Position numbers and translations under genes: made by a program. DNA of 64,000 nt from Anthoceros angustus. Its lineage: Eukaryota > Plantae > Anthocerotophyta. Positions 12,499-31,900 of the stretch are shown piece by piece. The DNA is taken from NCBI GenBank assembly GCA_010909165.1, contig VJWM01000103.1, positions 868,001-932,000 on the forward strand. Direction: 5' to 3'. The notes under the pieces were generated by a model. The model worked only from the letters and a program-made list of their open reading frames with translations, was not told where the DNA came from and ran no database searches. How positions within the stretch are numbered: the stretch's first letter is position 1; each line of letters starts with the position of its first letter.

Positions 12499-14527
12499 TT
12501 ATCGAATGCAGCTGATGTTGCTGAAACTGCATTTGGACTCCTTGGGCCGTCCACTGGCAGTGGTCTTGGTTTCAGGGTTACCGAACACCCTCCAAAATCG
12601 AAGAGTCTCATCCCCAGCAGCGGTGGCCACACTGTACCCATCAGGGCTCTGCAGATGCAGAAGGTGGACTACGTTAGTTCACGTATGAGATAGAGGCTAG
12701 AGGACAAAATGCCAAAAGCGGGCAGTTGCTTACATACCTGGGCCATGTGAAGCACTCTTGAGGTGTGACCGGTCAACTCAGCCATCTTGACCATTGTCGG
12801 GTACTTCCAAAGGATGAGCTGGTTTTGGCTGAACCCATGGGAGCTCAGGATTTCACGTTCATGCTGGCTCCACTGGAGAGAACACACTTGGGAATGTGTG
12901 TCGATGCTGTTCAAGCATGCGCCGGTGTGGGTGTTCCAGAACTTGATGCACCTGTCGGCTGTTCCTCCACCTGAAGCCAGCAGGTTGCTCTGGAATGGAC
13001 ACCATGCCAAGGCCTTGACGGCAGCTTGGTGGTCGGTGAGGCGGTGAAGGTAGGTGGAAGGAGCACCAGAGGCTCCGGCAGCAGCATCCCAGATGTGCAA
13101 CAGATTGTCGTTGCCTCCACTTGCCAGCTGCTGCCCGGAGGGAGACCATTTCAGTCCACATACTTCCTGCTCATGGGCGTCCATCCTTGCAACAACGTGA
13201 TCCCGTACCCTCACTGGTAATCCAACATACATTTCGGACGTCAGGGAGCTGCAGCAGGTTATGGTAACGCAAGTTGCGGGGATTCGTCCAAGTAGCTAGC
13301 ACCTACCATCGTGATTGAAGATCATGTTGTCACGTCCACCGGTGCTCAAAATGGGTCCATTCCATGCGAGTGCTCCAACACGAGCACTGTGGCCCTTCAG
13401 GGATCGGACCTGGACAATCGCCATGGACTACTGTCAGCTTCTTGATCCCCTTGATCCAAATGCCTAATCATCACAGGCCTGGGAACCAGAGAGTCCGACT
13501 GTGGTGGTCAAACCTGCTGAAGTGAAGCAGAGTCCCAGAGTTGGACATCAGAGTTGTTTAGTCCAACAGCAATATACTTGCCATCCGGTGCCCATCCAAC
13601 GCTAGTGACAGGACCACGGTCATCTCCAACCGTCATCAGCTCCTCAATGGAGCTGGTCTTTGCATCCCACAGATACACTGTGTTGCCCAGAGCAACAGCC
13701 AGAACATTGCTTATGCTCCAGTCCAGAAGGTTCAGGTAGTAGTCGTCCAGAAGTTCCGGAGCATCTAGCACTCTTTCGGCAGTCTGCAGCGGCCATGGAG
13801 ATTAGCATGGGTGCAGGTAATGAACAGAATCTGCTGGATGAAAGAAAATGAATGGAAATATCATAACACACACCTGAGGAACGTGACGAAACATCTTCCT
13901 AGACTTTGCAGGACCGGAGACAGAGTTCTGCGTGTAGAGAAGTTTCATGGGATTCTCGAATCCCTCAGGAGGGGGTGGAGGCTTGCTCTTGAAAGCCAGA
14001 ATTCTAACTTGCTGTTCTTTCAACAAGTTATCAGCTAATTGCTTCTTATACTCTTCCTGGAGATCAAGAGGGCAACGGGAGTCTTAGGTGGGAGGTATCA
14101 TCCAGACAAGGAAGAGAGTCTTGATAGGAGAAAAGAACTACCTTCATGGGAGAGCAGTCAGCCGAGGAGTTCTCCTTGGACAGCATGTAGTTGGCCATAT
14201 TCATATCCATAGCGCTCCGCTCAGGAATAAAACGATCACTCTGCATCCAGTAGGTGGATAACATGTCAGACGTGCCCTAGAGACTGAGTCGAACACGCAA
14301 AATCAAATACCCTAAAATCCGCGCTTCTCAGAGCGCCCATCTGCAATGCCCTGAGCCACCCATCCGACAAATCTGAGAGCATTGTTTGCTTGCTGCTGCA
14401 CCTTCATGCCAGGTGTCTTGCTGGTAGGCGTCTTTCGAGCCAGAAGACTTGGAGAAGAGTGTTCCCGCAGCGGGCAGCGCCTGATAGATTTGATGGCACT
14501 TTTCGGTGTCTTGTAGGAGGTAGCCAT
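12499..14527 (-). CDS. CDC20: APC/C activator CDC20 (fizzy), multi-exon
   Basis: C-box DRFIP, RILAF Mad2-binding motif, WD40 repeats ([47 protein letters not shown]) and a C-terminal IR tail (NISCIR*). Confidence 0.97.
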
Positions 14528-14785
14528 GGCAGATGTGGCGCGCTACAAACAAACTGTTAACAACCTCTCTTCCCCCTCTTACCAGGGGAGAACAGAAGCG
14601 ATAAACAAACAACTCAACAAGCTACCAAAACCTACGAACAAAACTCGGGATTCAAGGAAGAGAAGTACATATCAAAATGCATGCACAAACAGGTCAGTCA
14701 ATCACGAACAACCGCACATCAGCTGGAATGCCAGCGAGCTTGCAACGAGGGCAGGAGCAGAATCAGCGCTGTCCCACACGCAGTG

Positions 14786-14982
14786 AACGGGAAAGCGTTT
14801 GCGTGCGGGGGGAGCGCGATTCTGCAGAAGCGGACAGTGCTATACTGTAAGCCTTATACCGCACTGTCCTCTGCGGGGACGGGGAAGGGATCTCTGGTTT
14901 CAGCTACACGATTGGGAAAGAGGTAACGGACCTCGACGAGGACGCCCATTTGAACACTCCCAACGGTAATGTGCTGCAACGG
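14786..14982. promoter_or_regulatory. Cluster of four AACGG (MSA-like, MYB3R-binding) cores upstream of CDC20
   Basis: AACGG at 14786, 14925, 14962 and 14978; the 14962 site reads CCCAACGGTA, close to the YCYAACGGYY consensus. Confidence 0.6.
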
Positions 14983-15055
14983 TCCTTTGAAATGTAAAAT
15001 GTTCGGCCATTTCTTGTAAATAGTTTCACAGTTTTGGTACAAAATGAAATGAATC

Positions 15056-16547
15056 CTATCGTTTTCCTCTTCTAGCATGGTCCCAAAACCCATGTCTTCC
15101 TGACGAATGTTTGTTTGAATCCTTTGTTGATGTAATGTGCTTGTGATAATGGTTTCTATATCTCTTCTCGGAGTCTGAATATGGAATATCTTTTCTGCTA
15201 CTCCTTCTAATATTATTGTAAGAATGTCTATCCCTCTCCGTACGGTAGGATGACTTTCTAAGTCTGTCAACATATAAGTTTTCAAAAGAAGTTGTTCTTG
15301 AAGTGTCATAGTATTTGTTGTGGTGAGAGTGAGAATAAGAGTGTGACCTTCTCCTTCCAAGCTTCTCCAATGCTCTTCGAAGTTTTCGAGTGTGTTTATT
15401 AGTAAGAATATCAGTCCAACTGGCTTTCACATCTTTGCGACATTGTCGTTGTTGCTCTTCATACTTAGGGTCAGTCTCTTTTATGTAGTGTTTGGGCTCA
15501 CACAATTCCTGGGAGTTTGTTAGTTGCTTCAGTAATAGAGATTTTATGAAATTACTTTTTCAAGAAGTTTTAAGAGTTCAAATACTCACTGGATGTTTGG
15601 AATAAAATTTTTTATAGCCTCCTCTCAAAACAAACAAGTGTGGGAAGGCTTTATCATGTCCTGTGACTTTATGACGAGCTCGATCGAGAGCTTTCATTAA
15701 CTTGAACCTGGAGTAATATGAACATGTCAAGTCGGTCCATGTTCATTATTTCCTTGTGAATCATAAAAAAATATTTTTACAGATAGAACTGAGAACAAGC
15801 AAACTGACCGTCTGTTGTAAGACACAATGGTCATCTGCTGCAAGTAAGACAAAGGTAGCTTTTCGAACTGCAATTCTTGGCCATTCAATTATCCTGATGA
15901 ACGTGGTTTCTTGGGAGCTTGAACACTTGGCTTATCTTAAGATCTCAAAAGACTATTTTTGATGGAGCTGGATAGGAAAATCTTACTACGAATTAAGACT
16001 ACTTACATTTTGGGACCTCGTATATGAGAATACTCGCAATGAAAGATAATAATTGTTCGAGAACCATGCCCAACATGGGTATTATAGACATATTGCTCCA
16101 GGAGCAGTGGGTCACTTATATTTAATGCTCCCTGAAACAAAGTTAAAGACACCAGTTACATTCACCTTATACAAATTAGTGAGAGGTAAATTTTCTTGTT
16201 CTTTCAACAAGTAAACTGAATAATGTATGTCTGACATACTTTGATATGACCTCCTGCATATTCAAAAAAATAACGACAATCCACTAGCACAAATGTGTCC
16301 GCATCATATTTTAACTCGTTGGTTACAATTCCCTTCAGCTGCAAGAAACATGATAAGAAATGAAAAGTTCATATTAGCCTTGTCTTTATTCGAAGTAAAT
16401 AATATGATGATTGTAAAGTTTTGATTGAATTTTAATTACCACATCCACAGAAATTGTGGGATACTTAGATCTGGATACAAGAGGAAGAATTGAAGCTAAA
16501 TGAATCCTATGTTTTTTCTTTGGCCTTCCTGAATTACTTTCCTCCAT
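15056..16547 (-). CDS. CDC25: Canonical CDC25 (M-phase inducer) phosphatase, 5 exons: 16440-16547, 16240-16338, 16007-16131, 15590-15707, 15056-15508 (903 nt, 300 aa)
   Basis: Spliced translation includes LPLVSRSKYPTISVDVLKGIV, FVLVDCRYFFEYAGGHIKGALNI, IIIFHCEYSHIRGPKM, LDR, FPHLFVLRGGYKKFYSKHPELCEPKHY. All four introns are GT-AG with matching phases and there is no internal stop. The start codon is the least certain part. Confidence 0.9.
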
Positions 16548-17964
16548 TTGTTCTTGATCAAAATTTTATAAATTCATTTGTTTGCAGCAAGAGTGAATTT
16601 GTTGCATTCTAGACATGGATTTAATGTTGTTTTATTTGTCTACGTAAAGATACAAAATCTGCTTGCTTATGTAGACTTGGTTCAAGTTTGTTCATATTCT
16701 ATTTTTCACATTATTTTGACATAAAAATATTTTTATCCACACCATTAACAATCAAGGAATATCTACAAAATTATTCATGGGTGACCCATCTTTAGTAAAA
16801 AGAAACACAATTTCTCTTCAAAATGCATTCAAACATCTCATCATACTCAAACTAGGTGTATAGTCTTAGGTAACATACTAACTTGTAGAAATTATAGTAT
16901 TTTCTAAGTTTTTGAAAAACATGGGTAGGACATGAACTTAACTGAAATATAATTACTTTATGAGTTAAACTTACTAGATAGGTACCAGTGCCTACACTTA
17001 GAAGATACTTTTAAGTTTATTTTGTAATCCCTCTAAAATCTCCTACATTATGTTAATGTATATTTCTTCAATGAAAACTCATGTACAATTACAAAAATAT
17101 ATATCAAATAATAATTTATATATATGCCTAGATATATTTAAATAACTTTGTTTCATGAGGTTCATTCATATTCCTTTTGATTGATTGAAGACATGTTCAG
17201 AAAACTTTAATCGAGACATTTTCAACTTAAATCTTGTGATATTGTATACTGGTAGGTAGGCCTTTCCACATTCTAATTTCAGAAATTTATAGTAGGTGTA
17301 GTAGGAGATTTTTTGTTGGACCTTTATACAATCTAGTACTTTAGGGCACCGATCACTAATCTCCTTTTCACACTGTATTGGAGTAGATAGTATAACTCAT
17401 CTTTGTTACATAAAGACTCACCATATTATCAGTATTACTTATATATAGCTCATTAATTAATTATTAAAAACCATGGAGATCTTATAAATATGTAGAGATG
17501 CGGAGTCTCATCTACACTTGGGCAGTGGGAACAAACCTCTAAGGGGTGCTAGACCAAGGGCGACTAGCCCCCCCTGCCCCCCTTTCCCCCTCATTATCTA
17601 TCCTGAACCTACCTATCGGTCTAGAGCTGTCATAGTCTTGAATAAGGAAGAGCCTACATACCAACGGAATTGGAGATGTTTCATGCCCCCGCATTGAAAT
17701 CGGGTGGGTGGATATTAATTGATAAGTAAAGACTTATATCATTCTCTATTTTTTTCTATTTTTAGGTTTTATTTTTACTTTACTTCAATTTTTATAGGCC
17801 TTAAGAGTCCCACAAACAGGGACATAATATGCCCCGTGACGGCGGGGTTCGATCCAATAGGGGGCTTCTTGTGACATGAAATATGTATAGGAAGGTAAAC
17901 ACAAGAACACTACTAAGTAGGACATATCTGATTGTATACGGGTAGAGTAGGATAAGTATTGCAT

Positions 17965-18500
17965 CGACAACTTTTTCCAACGCGATGAGATTTTGCTTGG
18001 GTTTGGTCCAACCTCTAGCCTACTCTCTGTCAACATGCAGCTGTGGGGTCCCAATCAATGACTCTAGGACCCACCTGGTTCACTGTCTCGCTGGCTGATA
18101 GCGCGCATACACCCTACTCAATGACGTTTCTCGTTGAGCATACCTTATTTTGACCTGGGAGAACCAGGTTTCTGTTGCTGATGTGGTGGTAATATAGCCT
18201 ATCCGAGACAGTGTCTGCGAGCATGTTATAATCAACCCTCCGGATTGGGCAGACGAGGGGTGCTCAAGAACAAAGGTCCACAGGTACTCTCCCATGCAGG
18301 ATGGCCACACCTTCATCCCCCTTGCCATCGAGACTCACAAGGCAATGGGCAAGGATTTCTCTAGGCTCGTCAAGGCTTGTGCCAAGGCTTACTACAATCG
18401 CAAGAATGAGGTTGGTCTCCCCCTTTCTTGTATTGTGGCTTTCTTTCATGCAACAGGTATCTATCGCCCTGTAAAGGGCGTTGGCAAACACGGTGTACAG
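17965..18500 (+). mobile_element. CRE-clade retrotransposon 3' fragment (copy B): zinc knuckle and restriction-like endonuclease
   Basis: RFCLGLVQPLAYSLSTCSCG...THLVHC and MQDGHTFIPLAIETHKAMGKDF; homologous to copies C and D. Confidence 0.8.
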
Positions 18501-18737
18501 AACGGTGGCAAGCGCTTAAATTTGAATAAGTGTTTGAATTTTCACTTCGAAAAGGGAAGGGAAAAACATGTGTAATTTGATACAAAGTTTATTTGAATCC
18601 AAAGATCTTGACATCAGGGTTTTCATCTTGATGTCCAAACTTATTGCAGCATTGATTTAGGAGGAGTCAACTCGACGTCACCTTTCCTCCAGAACTAACA
18701 AGCAGCAAGTGATGTATACACAAAGGGGTAGAGGAAG

Positions 18738-19430
18738 ATGACGAGGATGTGGCTGAGGTTCTGCATCCCAACGACCCTATATAACTCTCGGATTGGAGAG
18801 CCGTCATCGTTTGCAAGAGGTAATAAGAAGAGTGGAACAATATGTAATTGGTGTAGAAGACCCAATCATATGGAAAAGGATTGTAGAAAAAAGAAGAATG
18901 AGGAACCTAGGAAAGAGGCTCCACCTAGAACAAACGTTATTGTGAAGACAAAGCAATCTTCAACAACTCCTGGTGTACTCATTGTATGCTTGACCTCCTT
19001 CGAATTCAAGCTTGCCAACACTTATAGGTACTTGGACAGTGGAGCTACATCACCAAGTCTGTTACAATAGAGACTCATTTGTTACAGTAGAGACTCATTT
19101 GAGTCTTTCGTACTTGCCAGCCACAGGACACAAGACAATCCTCCTCAAAGATGATCACAACCTTACCATAGCGGGTATAAATTCCGTTGTACTCAGGTGT
19201 GATTCAGGTCAAGCTGTTCGTATTCATCAGGTCTCTCAGGTTCTTCTTGCCATGTGCAAAAATAAAGCTTCTCGCCAGCCACAGGACAGAAGACAGTCCT
19301 CCTCGGAGATGATTACAACCTTACCATAGCAGGTGTAGATTCTATTGTACTCATGTGTGATTCAAGTCAAACTGTTCGTATTCATCAAGTCCCTCAGGTT
19401 CCCCGCCATGTGCCAAAATAACGCTTCCTG
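18738..19430 (+). mobile_element. Ty1/Copia gag-protease fragment with an internal ~157 bp tandem duplication
   Basis: CCHC knuckle CNWCRRPNHMEKDC, protease YLDSGAT, then LKDDHNLTIAG; duplicated unit at ~19115-19270 and ~19272-19430. Confidence 0.75.
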
Positions 19431-19695
19431 AAATTTTAAGCTTAAGATATTGATGGATATGATAAAGATCAATTCTCTCGTATCTTACAGTCGATGCACT
19501 CATACAACCCTGTCAAAAATAACACTTTTTAAACTTTTAAGCTTAACATATTGATAGATATGGTATAGATAAGTCCTTTGGTGACTTAAGGTCGATGCAC
19601 ACATACGACCCAGTAAAAAATAACGGTTCTTGATTGATTCATTATGATAACATGGTTTCACGAATACCAGGTGGTCACCGGAAAGCACACATATA

Positions 19696-20225
19696 CAGTC
19701 CACCCCCCCTAATTGGGACTGGTTCGGAGTGCCTTTAGAGGTCCCATTAAGGGAGGTGTCCCGATTGTATTTTCCCTATTTAAAAATAATAAAAATGTTA
19801 TACTTTAAAACAAATCAAAAAATACCCAAAAAAAGAAAATTTAAATTTTGATTGATAGGTTTCACTAAAAATAACTTTTACCAGTTCTTTATATAGTTGT
19901 TTGAAAGCTAGCACTCTCTCTAAGCAGCATCAAAAAACCTCTACCTATCATGAAGAAAAAGCTTAGCTTAAGAGTCTTCAATCACACCTAAAAGTCTATA
20001 AAGCTCTGAAATAATGGATTCTTTTTCTTTTTTAGATTTTTAGTAAAAAATGAGAAATCCCATTTAGGGAGGTAAAACTAACATGAATGTATGCTTCAAA
20101 AGGTCCCAAGTATCATTTAGGGAAAAGTCCCATTTGTTACATTATAAACTAAAGGGAGTAGGATGGGAGGTCCCATTTAGAGAGGAATCCCATTTATAGA
20201 ATTCCCAATTAGGGGGGGCCGACTG
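19696..20225. mobile_element. Tc1/mariner-type MITE (~530 bp) with TIRs and TA target duplication
   Basis: TA|CAGTCCACCCCCCCTAATTGGGA ... TCCCAATTAGGGGGGGCCGACTG|TA; internal repeats of a TCCCATT(T)A motif; non-coding and AT-rich. Confidence 0.8.
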
Positions 20226-20644
20226 TAATGCGATAAAAAATAACGCTTCCTGATTGATTCATTATGATAACATGGTTTCACAAATACCAATGGTCACCGG
20301 GTGGTCAATCTTACGTGGCATGACCTTAGTGTATCATATTGCACCCACCCAAAAGGTTAGGTGCAAAATGACACACCCGGTCGAATGGGGAATGTCAAAC
20401 CTATTTCTAATAAGCTTATGTCATAATTATTTTATCTTTATCTTAGAAAACGTATATCTTAGACTTATGAAGTGCAAAAATTTGTTGTTTTAAGGAAAGA
20501 GGGGATGGCGTGAACCCATCTGCTAATGGACACCAAAGAGAGACCTCAAGCATCAGAGTAAAGACGGACGAAGCAACTAAACTCTACATCTAAAATCACC
20601 CACCGCGCCGACAATGTGGTAATTAGGGCAATTGAATGTCGTAT

Positions 20645-23030
20645 TATAAAGCACTGCCCCGGGCCTCTCTTCGGGTGGCCTGTTTGGAACAGTCTATGAC
20701 CACCTTCGGGACCATTTTACTCCTAAGGATCCTTCTAGCAGTTTTTCCGAGCTGTTTCTTCTGGCTGCCGCTGTGGCGAGGGGGGAGACTCCTTCTCGGA
20801 TCTCTCAAGTGTTGGGTGCGAGCAGGTTGTTGGGGATGGAGAAGCCCACCCCAGGGGTGCGTCCTATCGCTGTCGGGGAGGCGTTCCTGTGGATTATTAG
20901 CCGTAGTATTGCCATCCAGCTCCGGGAGCAGTTCCAGGCCCATCTTAGTCCTCATTAGTTTGGGATTGCTCTTCAGTCGGCGTGGAGATGCAGCTTTTGG
21001 GGTGGAGGCGGTTCTCGAGACCCACCCTGATTGCTCTTCAGGTCGACGTGGAGAATGCCTTCAACTCTGTCTCACGATCAGCCATCTTCGACGAGCTCAA
21101 GAACGGAAGTGGGCAGTTGGCCAACCTTAGTCCCTTTGTCCGCTCCTTTTATGGATCTCCTTCCAACCTCTATTATCAGCATGGCCCCTCGGTGGAAGGG
21201 ATTTCTATGATGAGCTCGGCGACGGGCACTATGCAAGGTGACCCTCTGGGAGGTGCTCTCTTTGCGATGGCGCATTTCAGGGCTTTATCTTCTACTGCCT
21301 CTTCGGTGTGGGAATGTTTGTATTCGTCTATGGCCGACGATATCCATATCCTCGGGCCTGGAGACAAGGTTCAAGTAGCGCTTCAGAGCTCTCCTGCCTC
21401 GGTTTGAAGGTCAAAATCATCAAGTGCAAGGTTTGGTCTCCCTCTAGCGTTGTACCTTTTCTCCGGTATCCGGAGGGGGATATTGCTTCTACGCCGGGGC
21501 TTCGAGTTCTTGGTGTCCCGATTGGGCCTCCTGCCTTCACCCAAGATTATGTGGACGCGGCTTTGGCTGAAGATTTGGCGCACATTGACGACTTTTCTCA
21601 ACTGGGAGACTCGCAAGTGGCGTTTGGGATCCTCTCCTTTTGTTTTGCGCGCTGGCCAGGGTACCTTCTTCGAACGGTTGCCCCCTCCCCGGTTTTCTTA
21701 ACTAGCCTAAGGAATTTTGACAAGCGGCTTATGCAGGTTTTAGGCGACATCATCGACCCAGGCACCTTCGAGTGTGCGGCCGGGGATCTTGCAAAGCGGC
21801 AGGCGTTCCTTCCCATCGCTTTCGGGGGCACTAGTTTGCTGGCCACGGAGGCCTCCGCACTAGCGGCTTTCTTAGGGAGTTGGGCTCTCTCTGCCCTCAT
21901 CTTGTCTTCCCGTTTCTTAATTCGGCATTCACATATCTTGAAGGCTTTTGTCGCGGGCGTTGAAGAGGGGACTTTTCCCATGCGGGCCTCACTAAGATTA
22001 GCCAGGGACTCTTTATCCTCCGAGGCGAGGGCTGCCGTGCCGTCTTTTTCCTCGCTTTCTGAGGTTGGCCTCCGAGGGCTTCAGGCGTCCCTCCTGGAGA
22101 GACAGTACGGGCATGCGCAATTGGCCCTCCTCCGGGATTCCTCCATTCCTTAGCCCACTTGGGCTCGTCTCCGCTCTTGCTCAGGAAAGGGGGCAGGCTC
22201 ATGGCTTCTGGCTTGACCCAGTATTCAGGCGTTCCGCATCGCACTAGCAACTTTTTCCACCGCGATGCGTTTTCGCCTTGGCTTGGTCCATCCTCTAGCT
22301 TGCTCTCTTTCAACTTGGAGCTACGGGCCCCTCTCGATGACTTTGGAACGCACTTGGCTCGCTATCCCGCGGGTGGGCAGCGTATCGCTACACATGACGC
22401 CGTCCGGGATGTCATGTTCTCTATTGTCGAGGGAAGGTGGGTTCCTTCCATTTAGGGAGCGCCCTTACACCTTGCTCAACGAGGTTTCGCTTAGGGCATA
22501 CCTATTTTTGACCGGGGGGATCAGGTTTCGGTTGCTGATGCGGTGGTAACCGATCCCACCCGGGGGAGTGTCTGCGAACATGTTATTCTTAACCCTTCAG
22601 TTTGGGCGGCGGAGGGATGTGCGACGGCTAAGGTCCACAAGTACTCTCCTATGCAGGACGGCCACGCCTTCTCTAGGATTTCTCTAGGTACGTCAAGGCC
22701 TGCGCCAAGGCTTATCATAGCCGCAGGCATGGGGTTGGCCTCCCCCTGTCTTGTATTGTTGCTTTCTTCGGTGGGGTTTCCATCGCCTGCGAGGCGTTGG
22801 CTATGATGTATAGAACAACAGCGGAGATGCGACTTCTTGACACCGGTGGTAGTAGGCCTTTTCACATCCCTGACCACGAAGTTCTTCGGGCGGTTGGTAG
22901 TTTTGAAATGCGTGATCGTGGGGGCTAGTCCCCCGGCATGGTGCCCTTCGTCGGATTTTTTCCCTTTTTGTTTTTAGGGTGGATGGATTTTTCCCATCTT
23001 TTTTTTATAATAAAGTCTTCTTTCCAACCA
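20645..23030 (+). mobile_element. CRE-clade non-LTR retrotransposon, 5'-truncated (copy C): RT, zinc knuckle, RLE, 3' UTR
   Basis: SRLLGMEKPTPGVRPIAVGE, LQVDVENAFNSVSR, QGDPLGGALF, SMADDIHILG, GLRVLGVPIG, RFRLGL..THLAR..GGQRIATHDAVRD, ADAVVTDP..AAEGCATAKVHKY; T-rich 3' UTR with ATAAAG. Contains frameshifts and a stop. Confidence 0.85.
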
Positions 23031-28935: not shown

Positions 28936-31900
28936 TCACTCCCTTGTGTAAATGGGTGTGGGCACGCCGTAGCTCACGGGAGCAGCTCCAATGAGGAAAG
29001 GCAATTTACATGAATTTCTGCCGTCGCTAACTTGCCCCATGTGAACCACGGACCTGGGTTGTGGTGCCTTGCTGTTGCGGCTGGATTCCCGGCCAGCATC
29101 TTCCGGGGATGGGAAAGCAGCGGGCCCGTCGTCGGAGGCTGCCAGCCAGGAGTGGAGGAGAACGCGGCTGAAGCGGTCGATATCGCCGTCCGTCACGTCC
29201 CACAGGTTGGCGATGGCGGTGGGGCAGCCAGCCATGAGATAGGATAGCGGTATCCCCACGGGCTCGTAGTCGCCGCGGTCGGCGAGGCGCCCGCTACCGC
29301 ATCCCATGAGGAGCGCAGCCGCGCATTTCCCCAGCCGCCTGATTCGTCGTTCGGGTACGTACTGCTCGCCTGGGCACATCAAGTGAAGTCAGCAGACATC
29401 AACACGGAGAGATTGAAACTGACAGAAATAACTAAGCCTAAGCATCTGATTGCTCACCGCTGCCGTGACCGAAATAGACGAACAAATCATGCTCGGTGAG
29501 GCCTTCCAAGCAGTCGTCGACACTCGGCACTTCACCGGCTTTTCCCTGCGCGTAATTTCAGTGCTGATGCCTGGTCAGCGCTCATGTCGGGAGTTGAACT
29601 GCAACCACTGTACCTTTTACAAACTCTTACCTTCCAGCCTTCTTGCTGAGAGAACCAATCCTCAAATGCTGCCTGAGTGCTTGCTAGGTCTCCACTTGGG
29701 TTGAGGAGGTAGTAAGCATCGGAAGCATTCACCCAATTGGTCGGCAACTCATTTAACACAGAGCTCCGATGTATGAGGAGTGCCCGTAAGCTGCCCACCG
29801 ATGGCATACGATACGTCTCGTAGTCCCTGAGGCATGGGAGGCTTTCCCAAGGCAGTTTCTGCAAAAGCAACGAGAAAGGCAAGTATGTAAGTCCGACACC
29901 AACGGCGACACGGGTGAAGTCGCTTGCTTGACCCATGTTTCCGTCCTCCTACCTGGAGGTTGCTGTCTAGCACAAGCTCCACAGCTTGTCTATCCAGAGG
30001 CTGAGAATCTGGAGAGTCCTTCCCGTGCGGCACAGATCGTTTGGACTGGGCAATATCTCGTTGCGTTTGCCGCCTTATCCTGGATCTTCCGCGGGTGCGA
30101 CCATCACTTTGATCTTCTGAAGCAGATCTATGACCTCTCACTGAAGTTCTGTATGCTGCCGCGAAACCCTCCGCAGCTTGACGGATCCATTGTTGACGGT
30201 GATTAGGAACTGAGCTGTCGGCCTCACCAGGTAAGGAGAAGCCGGACCTGTTCCACCCAATCAGCCAGGCTAGCCCTGCCTCCAGCTGGCCTCTGCTCAG
30301 ACAGCCCAAGCCTTGTAGGAGAAGATGAACGAGATTTTCATCGACTTCCATCATTTGCTTCTCCGGTGCGCCCTGCTTCGAAATCTCTTTCAGCTCCTTG
30401 GAAAGAGCCTTTGCCGACATCTTCAGAGCTTGAGTAACACCTGAGTCCGACGGTCTTCCCAACAAGAAGCATTTCCACGGTCCCAGCCACAGGTCCTCCA
30501 GGGTGCTGCACAGTGAGATAACAACGTACGTGAGGCTACATCCTGAAGTTTTGAGGATACGACACAAGTAGAGAGCCAGGCTGTTGCGAGGACCTCAGCA
30601 ACGAAGAAAGTCTGAAATCGAGTTCGGTCCTCCATTTCCACCACGCAGTCTTTTGCTCAGTGGTTGTCACCGGCCCGGTTTCAGCTGTAGACTGACGACT
30701 CTCTTCCATGATGGAAGTAAACTCTGGGATGGCTTTCTGCAGCACATCCAGCACATGCTTGCCGTCATTCTCAGACGAAGTACTCGATTGGACACCTGCA
30801 TCTCCCACATAGTATGGGGAAGCCACCCCTACGCACAAGACGTAACTTATCAGTCTTTCAGTTTGGACATCTATCATATCGAGCATAGCATAACTTGACC
30901 TTACTCACCTTTCGTAAGAGGGGCAGCAGGCAACAGTATCACCGAGGGCTCAGCTCCAATATGCGTCACAAAGAGCCAAGCACAGCTGGTTGGATGTTCC
31001 CGTTGAATAAGGGAAACATGGTCTGTATCCACAAAACCTATACAACAAACCGTTGATTGCTCCAGACCACTGTGGAATCCATCTGCCCAAGCCTCAACGG
31101 CGTTGAGCCCCTCTGGCACTATCCTATACATGCCAGCCGAGAGCAAAGGTTATGGTTTGCAGGGTACAGTTGTCCAGAGGAGAGCCTTTCCAAGGAAGTG
31201 ACAAAACGCCAACCTGAGAGCTTGCTGCATTTCCTCGAGGCTCTTCTTACTTGAAAGTGAAACGAGACCCTACTCACCAAATACACATTGAACATTCATA
31301 ATGGATCTGACAGAACCAAGCTGCATACCACAACTAGCTTGGAGGCAAGGTGCTTACCTTTTCAGTCTCGGAGGTCATCTTGGAATTCACAACTGTGAGG
31401 TGCTGCTGGCGTGCTGTGGATCCTAGAGAGGTCTGCTGGAAATACGCCGCTAGAGAATGCAAGTCCCCAGAACCCCTTCCTGAATGGTGACAAACGCCTC
31501 CTGCGGAGATAGGTACATGCAGAAGGGCCAGAAGTTGTGCAACCTGAAACAGAATTCTTGTTAGATGCAGAGGAGTAAGGAACCTGCGACCAAATGAGGG
31601 ACAACCACAGCAACTAGTTCTTAGTAGCGGCATACCTTACGCAGAAGGGGTGGAGTCTGCTGACAAAGTAGGAATGATCTATGTAACCACGTAAGTGGCT
31701 GCTGAAGTCCTGTCCCATCAATTCTGCAGAAGAAACCAAACTTAGACCAAAGCTACGATACCACAACTGTACCTAGCTCGTTATTAAACACCGTCCCACG
31801 AATCACCTTGTGCTGTTTGTTGCAAGCTCTCTCCTAAGCCTTAGCAGGCTCATGTGGTAAAGTAGAGCAGCCTCCTCCAACGGGAAGAAGCTACTGGGAG

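Follow-up and report, generated by a model that had tools for sequence, protein, structure and literature searches.

To our knowledge, the textbook view for twenty years has been that land plants are without a true CDC25, and an initial annotation of the DNA described here was built on that premise. The premise is out of date: streptophytes have two CDC25 clades, and the clade homologous to canonical CDC25 is published from bryophytes and streptophyte algae (Plant Cell 2026, PMC13237563). Marchantia polymorpha MpCDC25;1 is G2/M-specific, and the canonical clade was concluded to have been lost in vascular plants in a study in which gymnosperms were not sampled (PMC13237563); the CDC25 of Ostreococcus tauri is cited there as shown to be functional (Khadaroo et al. 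2004, cited in PMC13237563). We analyzed a stretch of 64,000 nucleotides (nt) of Anthoceros angustus DNA (contig VJWM01000103.1, positions 868,001 to 932,000 of the forward strand; hereafter the window), whose minus strand carries a CDC25 gene at 15056-16547. Our analysis indicates that this is probably a real, intact, and conserved gene of canonical type and of ancient vertical descent. The earlier claim that a real CDC25 survives in a land-plant lineage was correct in substance, the gene being intact, canonical, and placed in a plant clade, but it is not the first, such genes having been published in April 2026. What is new is an apparently unannotated copy, the evidence of its introns, and a tie to Ginkgo that conflicts with the clade being "lost in vascular plants."

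Compared by description, the window CDC25 resembles MpCDC25;1 in being a canonical-type bryophyte CDC25 distinct from the Arabidopsis-type small CDC25/ACR2, and it resembles the O. tauri protein, as far as the citing paper describes the latter, in being a canonical CDC25 of the green lineage. It differs from MpCDC25;1, which is expressed and G2/M-specific, in that no mRNA was seen for it in the RNA data sampled, and from the published canonical clade, said to be lost in vascular plants, in having its closest relatives in Ginkgo. With human CDC25A, CDC25B, and CDC25C (1C25, 1QB0, and 3OP3) it shares the rhodanese fold and, in collinear order, DCR..EY.GGHI, HCE[FY]S..RGP, DR, GGYK.F, and the LCEP helix; the human proteins also have a regulatory N-terminus of 300-400 amino acids (aa) (PF06617) that is absent from the window CDC25, and Glu478 of their loop corresponds to Ile. 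Arabidopsis CDC25 (1T3K) and the ACR2/Ych1 proteins share the rhodanese fold and the C-x5-R loop but differ in scoring 15-38 bits against the profile of the clade described below, and in being absent from the matches of single exons to Protein Data Bank (PDB) chains (E up to 10). The ACR2 type is a single domain of ~130-150 aa that lacks both DCR..EY..GGHI and a Glu after the Cys and that matches ACR2/Ych1 best, a description that the window CDC25 does not fit.

The gene structure proposed in the initial annotation was reproduced exactly by a script rebuild: on the minus strand at 15056-16547, five exons with end phases 0, 0, 2, and 0 form an open coding sequence of 903 nt (300 aa, 0 internal stops), and the introns of 101, 108, 299, and 81 nt each run from GT to AG.

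16440..16547, minus strand: exon 1, 108 nt, residues 1-36, with the ATG at 16547
16339..16439, minus strand: intron 1, 101 nt, GT..AG, phase 0, before LKGIV
16240..16338, minus strand: exon 2, 99 nt, residues 37-69, containing the DCRYFFEYAGGHIK motif
16132..16239, minus strand: intron 2, 108 nt, phase 0
16007..16131, minus strand: exon 3, 125 nt, residues 70-111 (the two first bases of codon 111)
15708..16006, minus strand: intron 3, 299 nt, phase 2, splitting the Met codon after RGPK
15590..15707, minus strand: exon 4, 118 nt, residues 111-150, carrying DR and FPHLFVLRGGYKKFYSKHP
15509..15589, minus strand: intron 4, 81 nt, phase 0, 8 residues past GGY
15056..15508, minus strand: exon 5, 453 nt including the stop (15058-15056), residues 151-181 ending the catalytic domain, then the tail

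Exon 1 encodes a short N-terminus that includes the basic sequence RPKKKHR; an in-frame TGA lies four codons 5′ of the ATG, and the start codon aligns with the starts of the Ginkgo and 187-aa homologs introduced below. The spliced protein aligns with the Ginkgo protein Gb_10573 over 181 residues (E 6e-55) with two gaps, neither at an exon junction, which provides independent support for the splice sites. Exon 5 is the sole long plain open reading frame (ORF) within the gene (149 aa), in agreement with the observation that the last exon alone stood in the ORF track; an exact database look-up of this ORF returned no record, and the window has no Rfam matches. The five-exon model with its ordered motifs is far beyond chance.

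The CDC25 motifs had been listed in a definite order, and all are present in it: DCRYFFEYAGGHIKGALNI (residues 56-74), the active-site loop (residues 100-109), the DR motif (residues 119-120), and FPHLFVLRGGYKKFYSKHPELCEPKHY (residues 132-158). The upstream motif D-C-R-x-x-x-E-Y-x-G-G-H-I-x-G-A occurs as DCRYFFEYAGGHIKGA (residues 56-71). The loop HCEYSHIRGP (with Cys101 and Arg107) fits H-C-E-[FY]-S-x-x-R-G-P, and its Cys is immediately followed by Glu; HCEYSHIR is encoded at 16041-16018, Cys101 at 16038-16036, and Arg107 at 16020-16018. In the C-terminal part of the catalytic domain the DR motif is followed by GGYK.F and then by the LCEP..Y helix, exon 5 beginning with ELCEPKHY...KASW. The protein ends in a lineage-specific basic tail of 119 aa, rich in R, S, H, K, and Y, whose frame stays open in just 6 of 20000 shuffles.

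A long N-terminal regulatory domain (PF06617) is typical of animal CDC25 but is not universal. The window CDC25 has 36 residues before its catalytic domain, and exon 1 has no Pfam match; short forms of CDC25 also occur in molluscs and Ginkgo, so the missing domain does not disqualify the protein.

The assignment to canonical CDC25 was approached by exon, by profile, and by fold. When exons 2, 3, and 4 were searched singly against all PDB sequences (E up to 10), each matched human CDC25A/B/C only, at collinear chain positions (34-63, 90-107, and 125-145); exon 2 did so with E values down to 3.1e-6 and also gave a weak match to Pfam Rhodanese, and the active-site loop of exon 3 aligned to the CDC25A/B loop. 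A profile built from the closest relatives together with the exon pieces of the window CDC25 scored CDC25A/B/C at 136-149 bits, Leishmania LmACR2 at 38, the rhodanese domains of MKPs at 27-32, yeast Ych1 at 24, and Arabidopsis CDC25 (1T3K) at 15. For the predicted fold of the Ginkgo relative (mean model confidence, pLDDT, 92.5), the top 25 matches are reviewed CDC25s from yeasts to humans (E 1e-13 to 1e-18), after which the ranking drops to Ych1/Ibp1 at ~1e-7; a search of the ESM Atlas confirmed family membership and added nothing further. Together, the exon matches restricted to CDC25A/B/C, the gap of ~100 bits, and the fold ranking lead us to reject an ACR2 or Arabidopsis-type small CDC25 identity. 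By these comparisons the gene is classed as a canonical-type CDC25, as the initial annotation had predicted, and not as ACR2 type.

A phmmer search of the whole library with exon 2 gave four matches, one of which was Ginkgo biloba Gb_10573 (190 aa); searches from that protein added its tandem neighbor Gb_10572 and a family of 187-aa proteins. The relatives recovered in this clade are as follows.

P0003 and P0005: Ginkgo Gb_10573 and Gb_10572
P0006 and P0007: the 187-aa family

The two Ginkgo proteins (from EukProt) have adjacent numbers, are 190 and 192 aa long and 88% identical to each other, and consist of the catalytic domain only. The 187-aa family was seen only on contigs of ~1 kb with unbroken ORFs, in dozens of Sequence Read Archive (SRA) runs and three Joint Genome Institute (JGI) samples; such contigs in RNA data indicate that the family represents expressed mRNAs. 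Across the catalytic domain, the window CDC25 is 44-45% identical to Gb_10573, Gb_10572, and the 187-aa family. With them it shares the short N-terminus, a spacing after DR that is longer by two residues, and the ...KASW end; they stop after the catalytic domain (187-192 aa), whereas the window protein adds its 119-aa basic tail.

In a maximum-likelihood tree of 59 sequences, six proteins (the window CDC25, the Ginkgo proteins, and members of the 187-aa family) form a single clade (support 100/96) that lies outside those of animals and fungi. A search with the clade profile scored the four known members at 354-373 bits and the next protein at 173; in the 120-381 aa range of the protein database it found no other named plant protein and none from the window's own genome. 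It thus appears that the gene lacks an annotation, or at any rate is absent from the protein database searched, and the lack of a full-length model there fits the earlier description of it as hidden. A profile search led by an animal-like sequence was dominated by mollusc and arthropod CDC25s, with no plants among the matches listed.

Three residues of human CDC25B, Arg488, Arg492, and Tyr497, are what we take to be hot spots for docking of the cyclin-dependent kinase (CDK). A hand alignment, anchored on the PDB-matched stretches of exons 3 and 4 and on the alignments with the Ginkgo and 187-aa proteins, places Lys, Arg, and Gly of the window CDC25 at these positions. The gymnosperm relatives retain Arg, Arg, and Tyr; the Tyr at the Tyr497 position, in both the Ginkgo and the 187-aa proteins, sets them apart from the window CDC25, with its Gly and its much longer branch.

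The introns place the gene in the ancestral CDC25 family. Exon structures were solved for the CDC25 genes of the mollusc Mya arenaria and the chytrid Rhizoclosmatium: introns 1 and 4 of the window gene are identical in position and phase in both, intron 3 is identical in position and phase in Rhizoclosmatium, and intron 2 is found in neither. Shared positions and phases of this kind imply vertical descent from an ancestral gene, and they provide direct evidence for identifying the plant gene with the ancestral CDC25 of eukaryotes. The window CDC25 is an old eukaryotic gene, vertically inherited. Origin as a retrocopy or from a bacterial source is ruled out by the four spliceosomal introns, three of them at ancestral CDC25 positions.

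A sister species also carries the locus, and its contigs are ~90% identical to the window across each exon and intron from exon 1 to intron 3. In exons 2 and 3 all seven listed differences are synonymous third-position changes, whereas the 108-nt intron 2 has 16 (~15%); the listed differences are a sample, those near contig ends being unlisted. Synonymous-only exon changes set against the 16 changes in intron 2 point clearly, at the level of sequence, to purifying selection on CDC25 in at least two sister species since they split.

The gene had been described as richer in AT than its neighbors, with ~39% GC in exon 3, and both points are borne out: the computed value for exon 3 is 39.2%, the exons as a whole have 36-39% GC and the introns 25-37%, and the GC content of third codon positions (GC3) is 0.32, compared with 0.59 in the neighboring CDC20 gene. 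The features concerned are these.

14990..17500: AT-rich block, 33% GC, ~2.5 kb, consisting of CDC25 and its upstream region; the flanks have ~50% GC
16548..17500, minus strand: CDC25 upstream region, 28% GC, observed-to-expected CpG ratio 0.16, no AACGG
12499..14527, minus strand: CDC20 gene, 7 exons, 468 aa, GC3 0.59, complete

The observed-to-expected CpG ratio is 0.50 in the CDC25 gene and 0.55 in the expressed CDC20; CpG depletion through methylation decay was rejected as the cause of the AT-richness, the two genes being nearly alike in this ratio.

Several results weigh against reading the locus as a working, conserved CDC25. The spliced transcript was not seen: in the single same-species RNA run its depth is 0, compared with 5-8 for CDC20. 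The sister-species contigs, from runs labeled "RNA?", contain the CDC25 introns and are thus DNA-like or unspliced; the check for spliced transcripts, whose absence the initial annotation had counted against the gene, came back empty, on the thin sampling of one same-species RNA run and these contigs. The difference in GC3 is large for a gene about 530 bp from CDC20. The core of the mitosis-specific activator (MSA) element, AACGG, is absent from the 950 nt upstream of CDC25, whereas the CDC20 promoter has four. The window CDC25 has a long branch (~1.0) in the maximum-likelihood tree and, in the hand alignment, a Gly at the Tyr497-equivalent hot spot. Named moss, liverwort, lycophyte, and fern members of the clade were not found at 105-381 aa, so that its distribution is patchy. 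The frame of the tail is tentative, since two of the three frames of its coding region (15059-15415, minus strand) are open.

The second of those open frames deserves a separate remark. Across the tail, the +1 frame is a 168-aa ORF (14854-15360) that reaches into the CDC20 promoter, so that one indel would be enough to produce a different long tail.

The four AACGG cores lie at 14786-14982, in the 460 bp that separate the CDC25 stop from the CDC20 start codon, and one of them, CCCAACGGTAA at 14959-14969, is near the full MSA consensus. Four clustered MSA cores are consistent with G2/M control of CDC20.

The alternative that survives best is that of a silenced duplicate turning into a pseudogene, untranscribed and drifting toward AT, with the working canonical CDC25 at another locus; we consider this unlikely. 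In its favor are the RNA depth of 0 where CDC20 is expressed, the AT-richness of a gene that adjoins retroelement and MITE-like debris at 17500-23000, the long branch, and the Gly at the Tyr497 hot spot as aligned by hand. Yet the frame is fully open with every motif intact, the seven of seven listed sister-species exon differences are synonymous against ~15% divergence in intron 2, and the CpG ratio (0.50) is close to that of CDC20 (0.55). The variant contig described next would also favor a duplicate, with its half depth and clustered non-synonymous changes.

One contig in a same-species DNA run, over 15245-15508, has about half depth (9.6 vs 16.6) and differs from the window within the CDC25 tail by a cluster of five substitutions (15387-15421), most of them non-synonymous. 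It may represent a second copy or another allele.

Horizontal gain from another eukaryote, a large DNA virus, or a transposon, with the AT-rich composition of the donor retained, is improbable. The four introns, three of them at ancestral CDC25 positions, argue against it, as do the nearest relatives, which are plant (100/96) and not animal, fungal, or protist. The sharp 2.5-kb composition island that coincides with the CDC25 gene, and the patchiness of the clade among plants, are what such a transfer might leave behind, but no terminal repeats bound the AT-rich block, and the locus is common to the sister species. Neither two scans of IMG/VR nor a fold search of BFVD turned up a viral protein of CDC25 type, the best viral match being a generic rhodanese (E 0.036, 14% identity): the IMG/VR scan with the window ORF gave one spurious 16-residue match to a GC-rich phage contig (L001), and the scan with the Ginkgo protein gave no match. 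Given the ancestral introns and these negative searches, a viral origin is without support.

If the gene is what the comparisons suggest, its product would be a short CDC25 dual-specificity phosphatase with a rhodanese-fold catalytic domain, a catalytic Cys101-x5-Arg107, a minimal N-terminus, and a basic C-terminal tail. In a CDK (CDKA or CDKB) phosphorylated at its inhibitory Thr14/Tyr15, the Cys101 thiolate would attack the phosphate, Arg107 and the loop amides would stabilize the phospho-cysteine intermediate, and dephosphorylation of the CDK would reverse phosphorylation by WEE1. Lacking a regulatory N-terminus, the enzyme is probably controlled at the level of transcription, by restriction to certain tissues, or by way of its tail. 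The substrate, the activity on CDK pThr14/pTyr15, and the time and place of expression are inferred.

A different function for the same fold is very unlikely. On this account the window CDC25 would be a true member of the fold that has been re-purposed, acting on a phosphoprotein other than a CDK or as an ACR2-like arsenate reductase, and not as a mitotic inducer. The missing N-terminal regulatory domain, the one altered docking hot spot, the lack of an MSA element upstream, and the unusual RS/H-rich tail could each be taken in its favor; every motif that separates CDC25 from the ACR2 type is nevertheless retained, the clade profile gives CDC25A/B/C ~100 bits more than ACR2-type chains, and the hand alignment keeps a Lys at hot-spot Arg488 and an Arg at Arg492.

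A contaminant or assembly mis-join, which the composition break at ~14990 and the fragmentation of the DNA-run Logan contigs over 15600-16340 might suggest, is hardly credible, since a contig from the DNA run of the same species (14661-15169) spans that boundary and the CDC25 stop at a depth of ~16.7, the same as that of the CDC20 contig, and the sister species has the locus at ~90% identity. The bridging contig joins CDC25 to the CDC20 promoter; the DNA run may share a sample with the assembly, so this contig support is not fully independent.

Relative to the window, the DNA-run contigs have many single-base deletions in the non-coding flanks within 14572-17175 (e.g., 14572, 14585, 14749, 16723, and 16797). 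These may be residual homopolymer assembly errors or strain differences.

Returning to a vertically inherited canonical CDC25, the Ginkgo relatives allow a broader and tentative proposal, for which we would not claim an even chance: that the window gene, the two tandem Ginkgo genes, and the widely expressed 187-aa family belong to a plant-wide lineage of minimal canonical CDC25s, limited to the catalytic domain and extending from bryophytes to seed plants, in which loss would have come later, toward the angiosperms, and gymnosperms would keep a switch of the WEE1/CDC25 type. If the Ginkgo link is true, the account of when plants lost the CDK Tyr15 switch would have to be redrawn, and the short plant CDC25 would be a tractable test case for Tyr15 control in plant mitosis.

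Same-species RNA contigs at depths of 5-8 are spliced at all six introns of the neighboring CDC20 gene (85-161 nt) and so confirm them. Introns this short (81-299 nt in CDC25), a set of close sister species, and neighbors typical of plants, among them the O-FucT family gene, CDC20, and the CLC channel, are in keeping with a hornwort genome. On the other side, upstream of CDC25, transposon debris extends over 17500-23000, and the ORFs at 20636-22153 have no Pfam match. Further along, a second AT-rich stretch (50000-57000, 30-43% GC) contains ORFs that likewise lack a Pfam match. The remaining features of the window are listed here, those from 27048 onward being Pfam assignments.

18738-19070: zinc-knuckle (gag-like) ORF
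19694-19718 and 20203-20227: inverted repeat pair of 25 nt, resembling a miniature inverted-repeat transposable element (MITE)
17968-18445: fragments duplicated at 22248-22768, 76-84% identity
27048-28280: CLC chloride channel, single exon
29749-30567: separase-like Peptidase_C50 fragment, below the cut-off
39259-41345: O-FucT family glycosyltransferase, three exons
44395-44868: aldehyde dehydrogenase, single exon
45601-46969: MFS transporter, single exon

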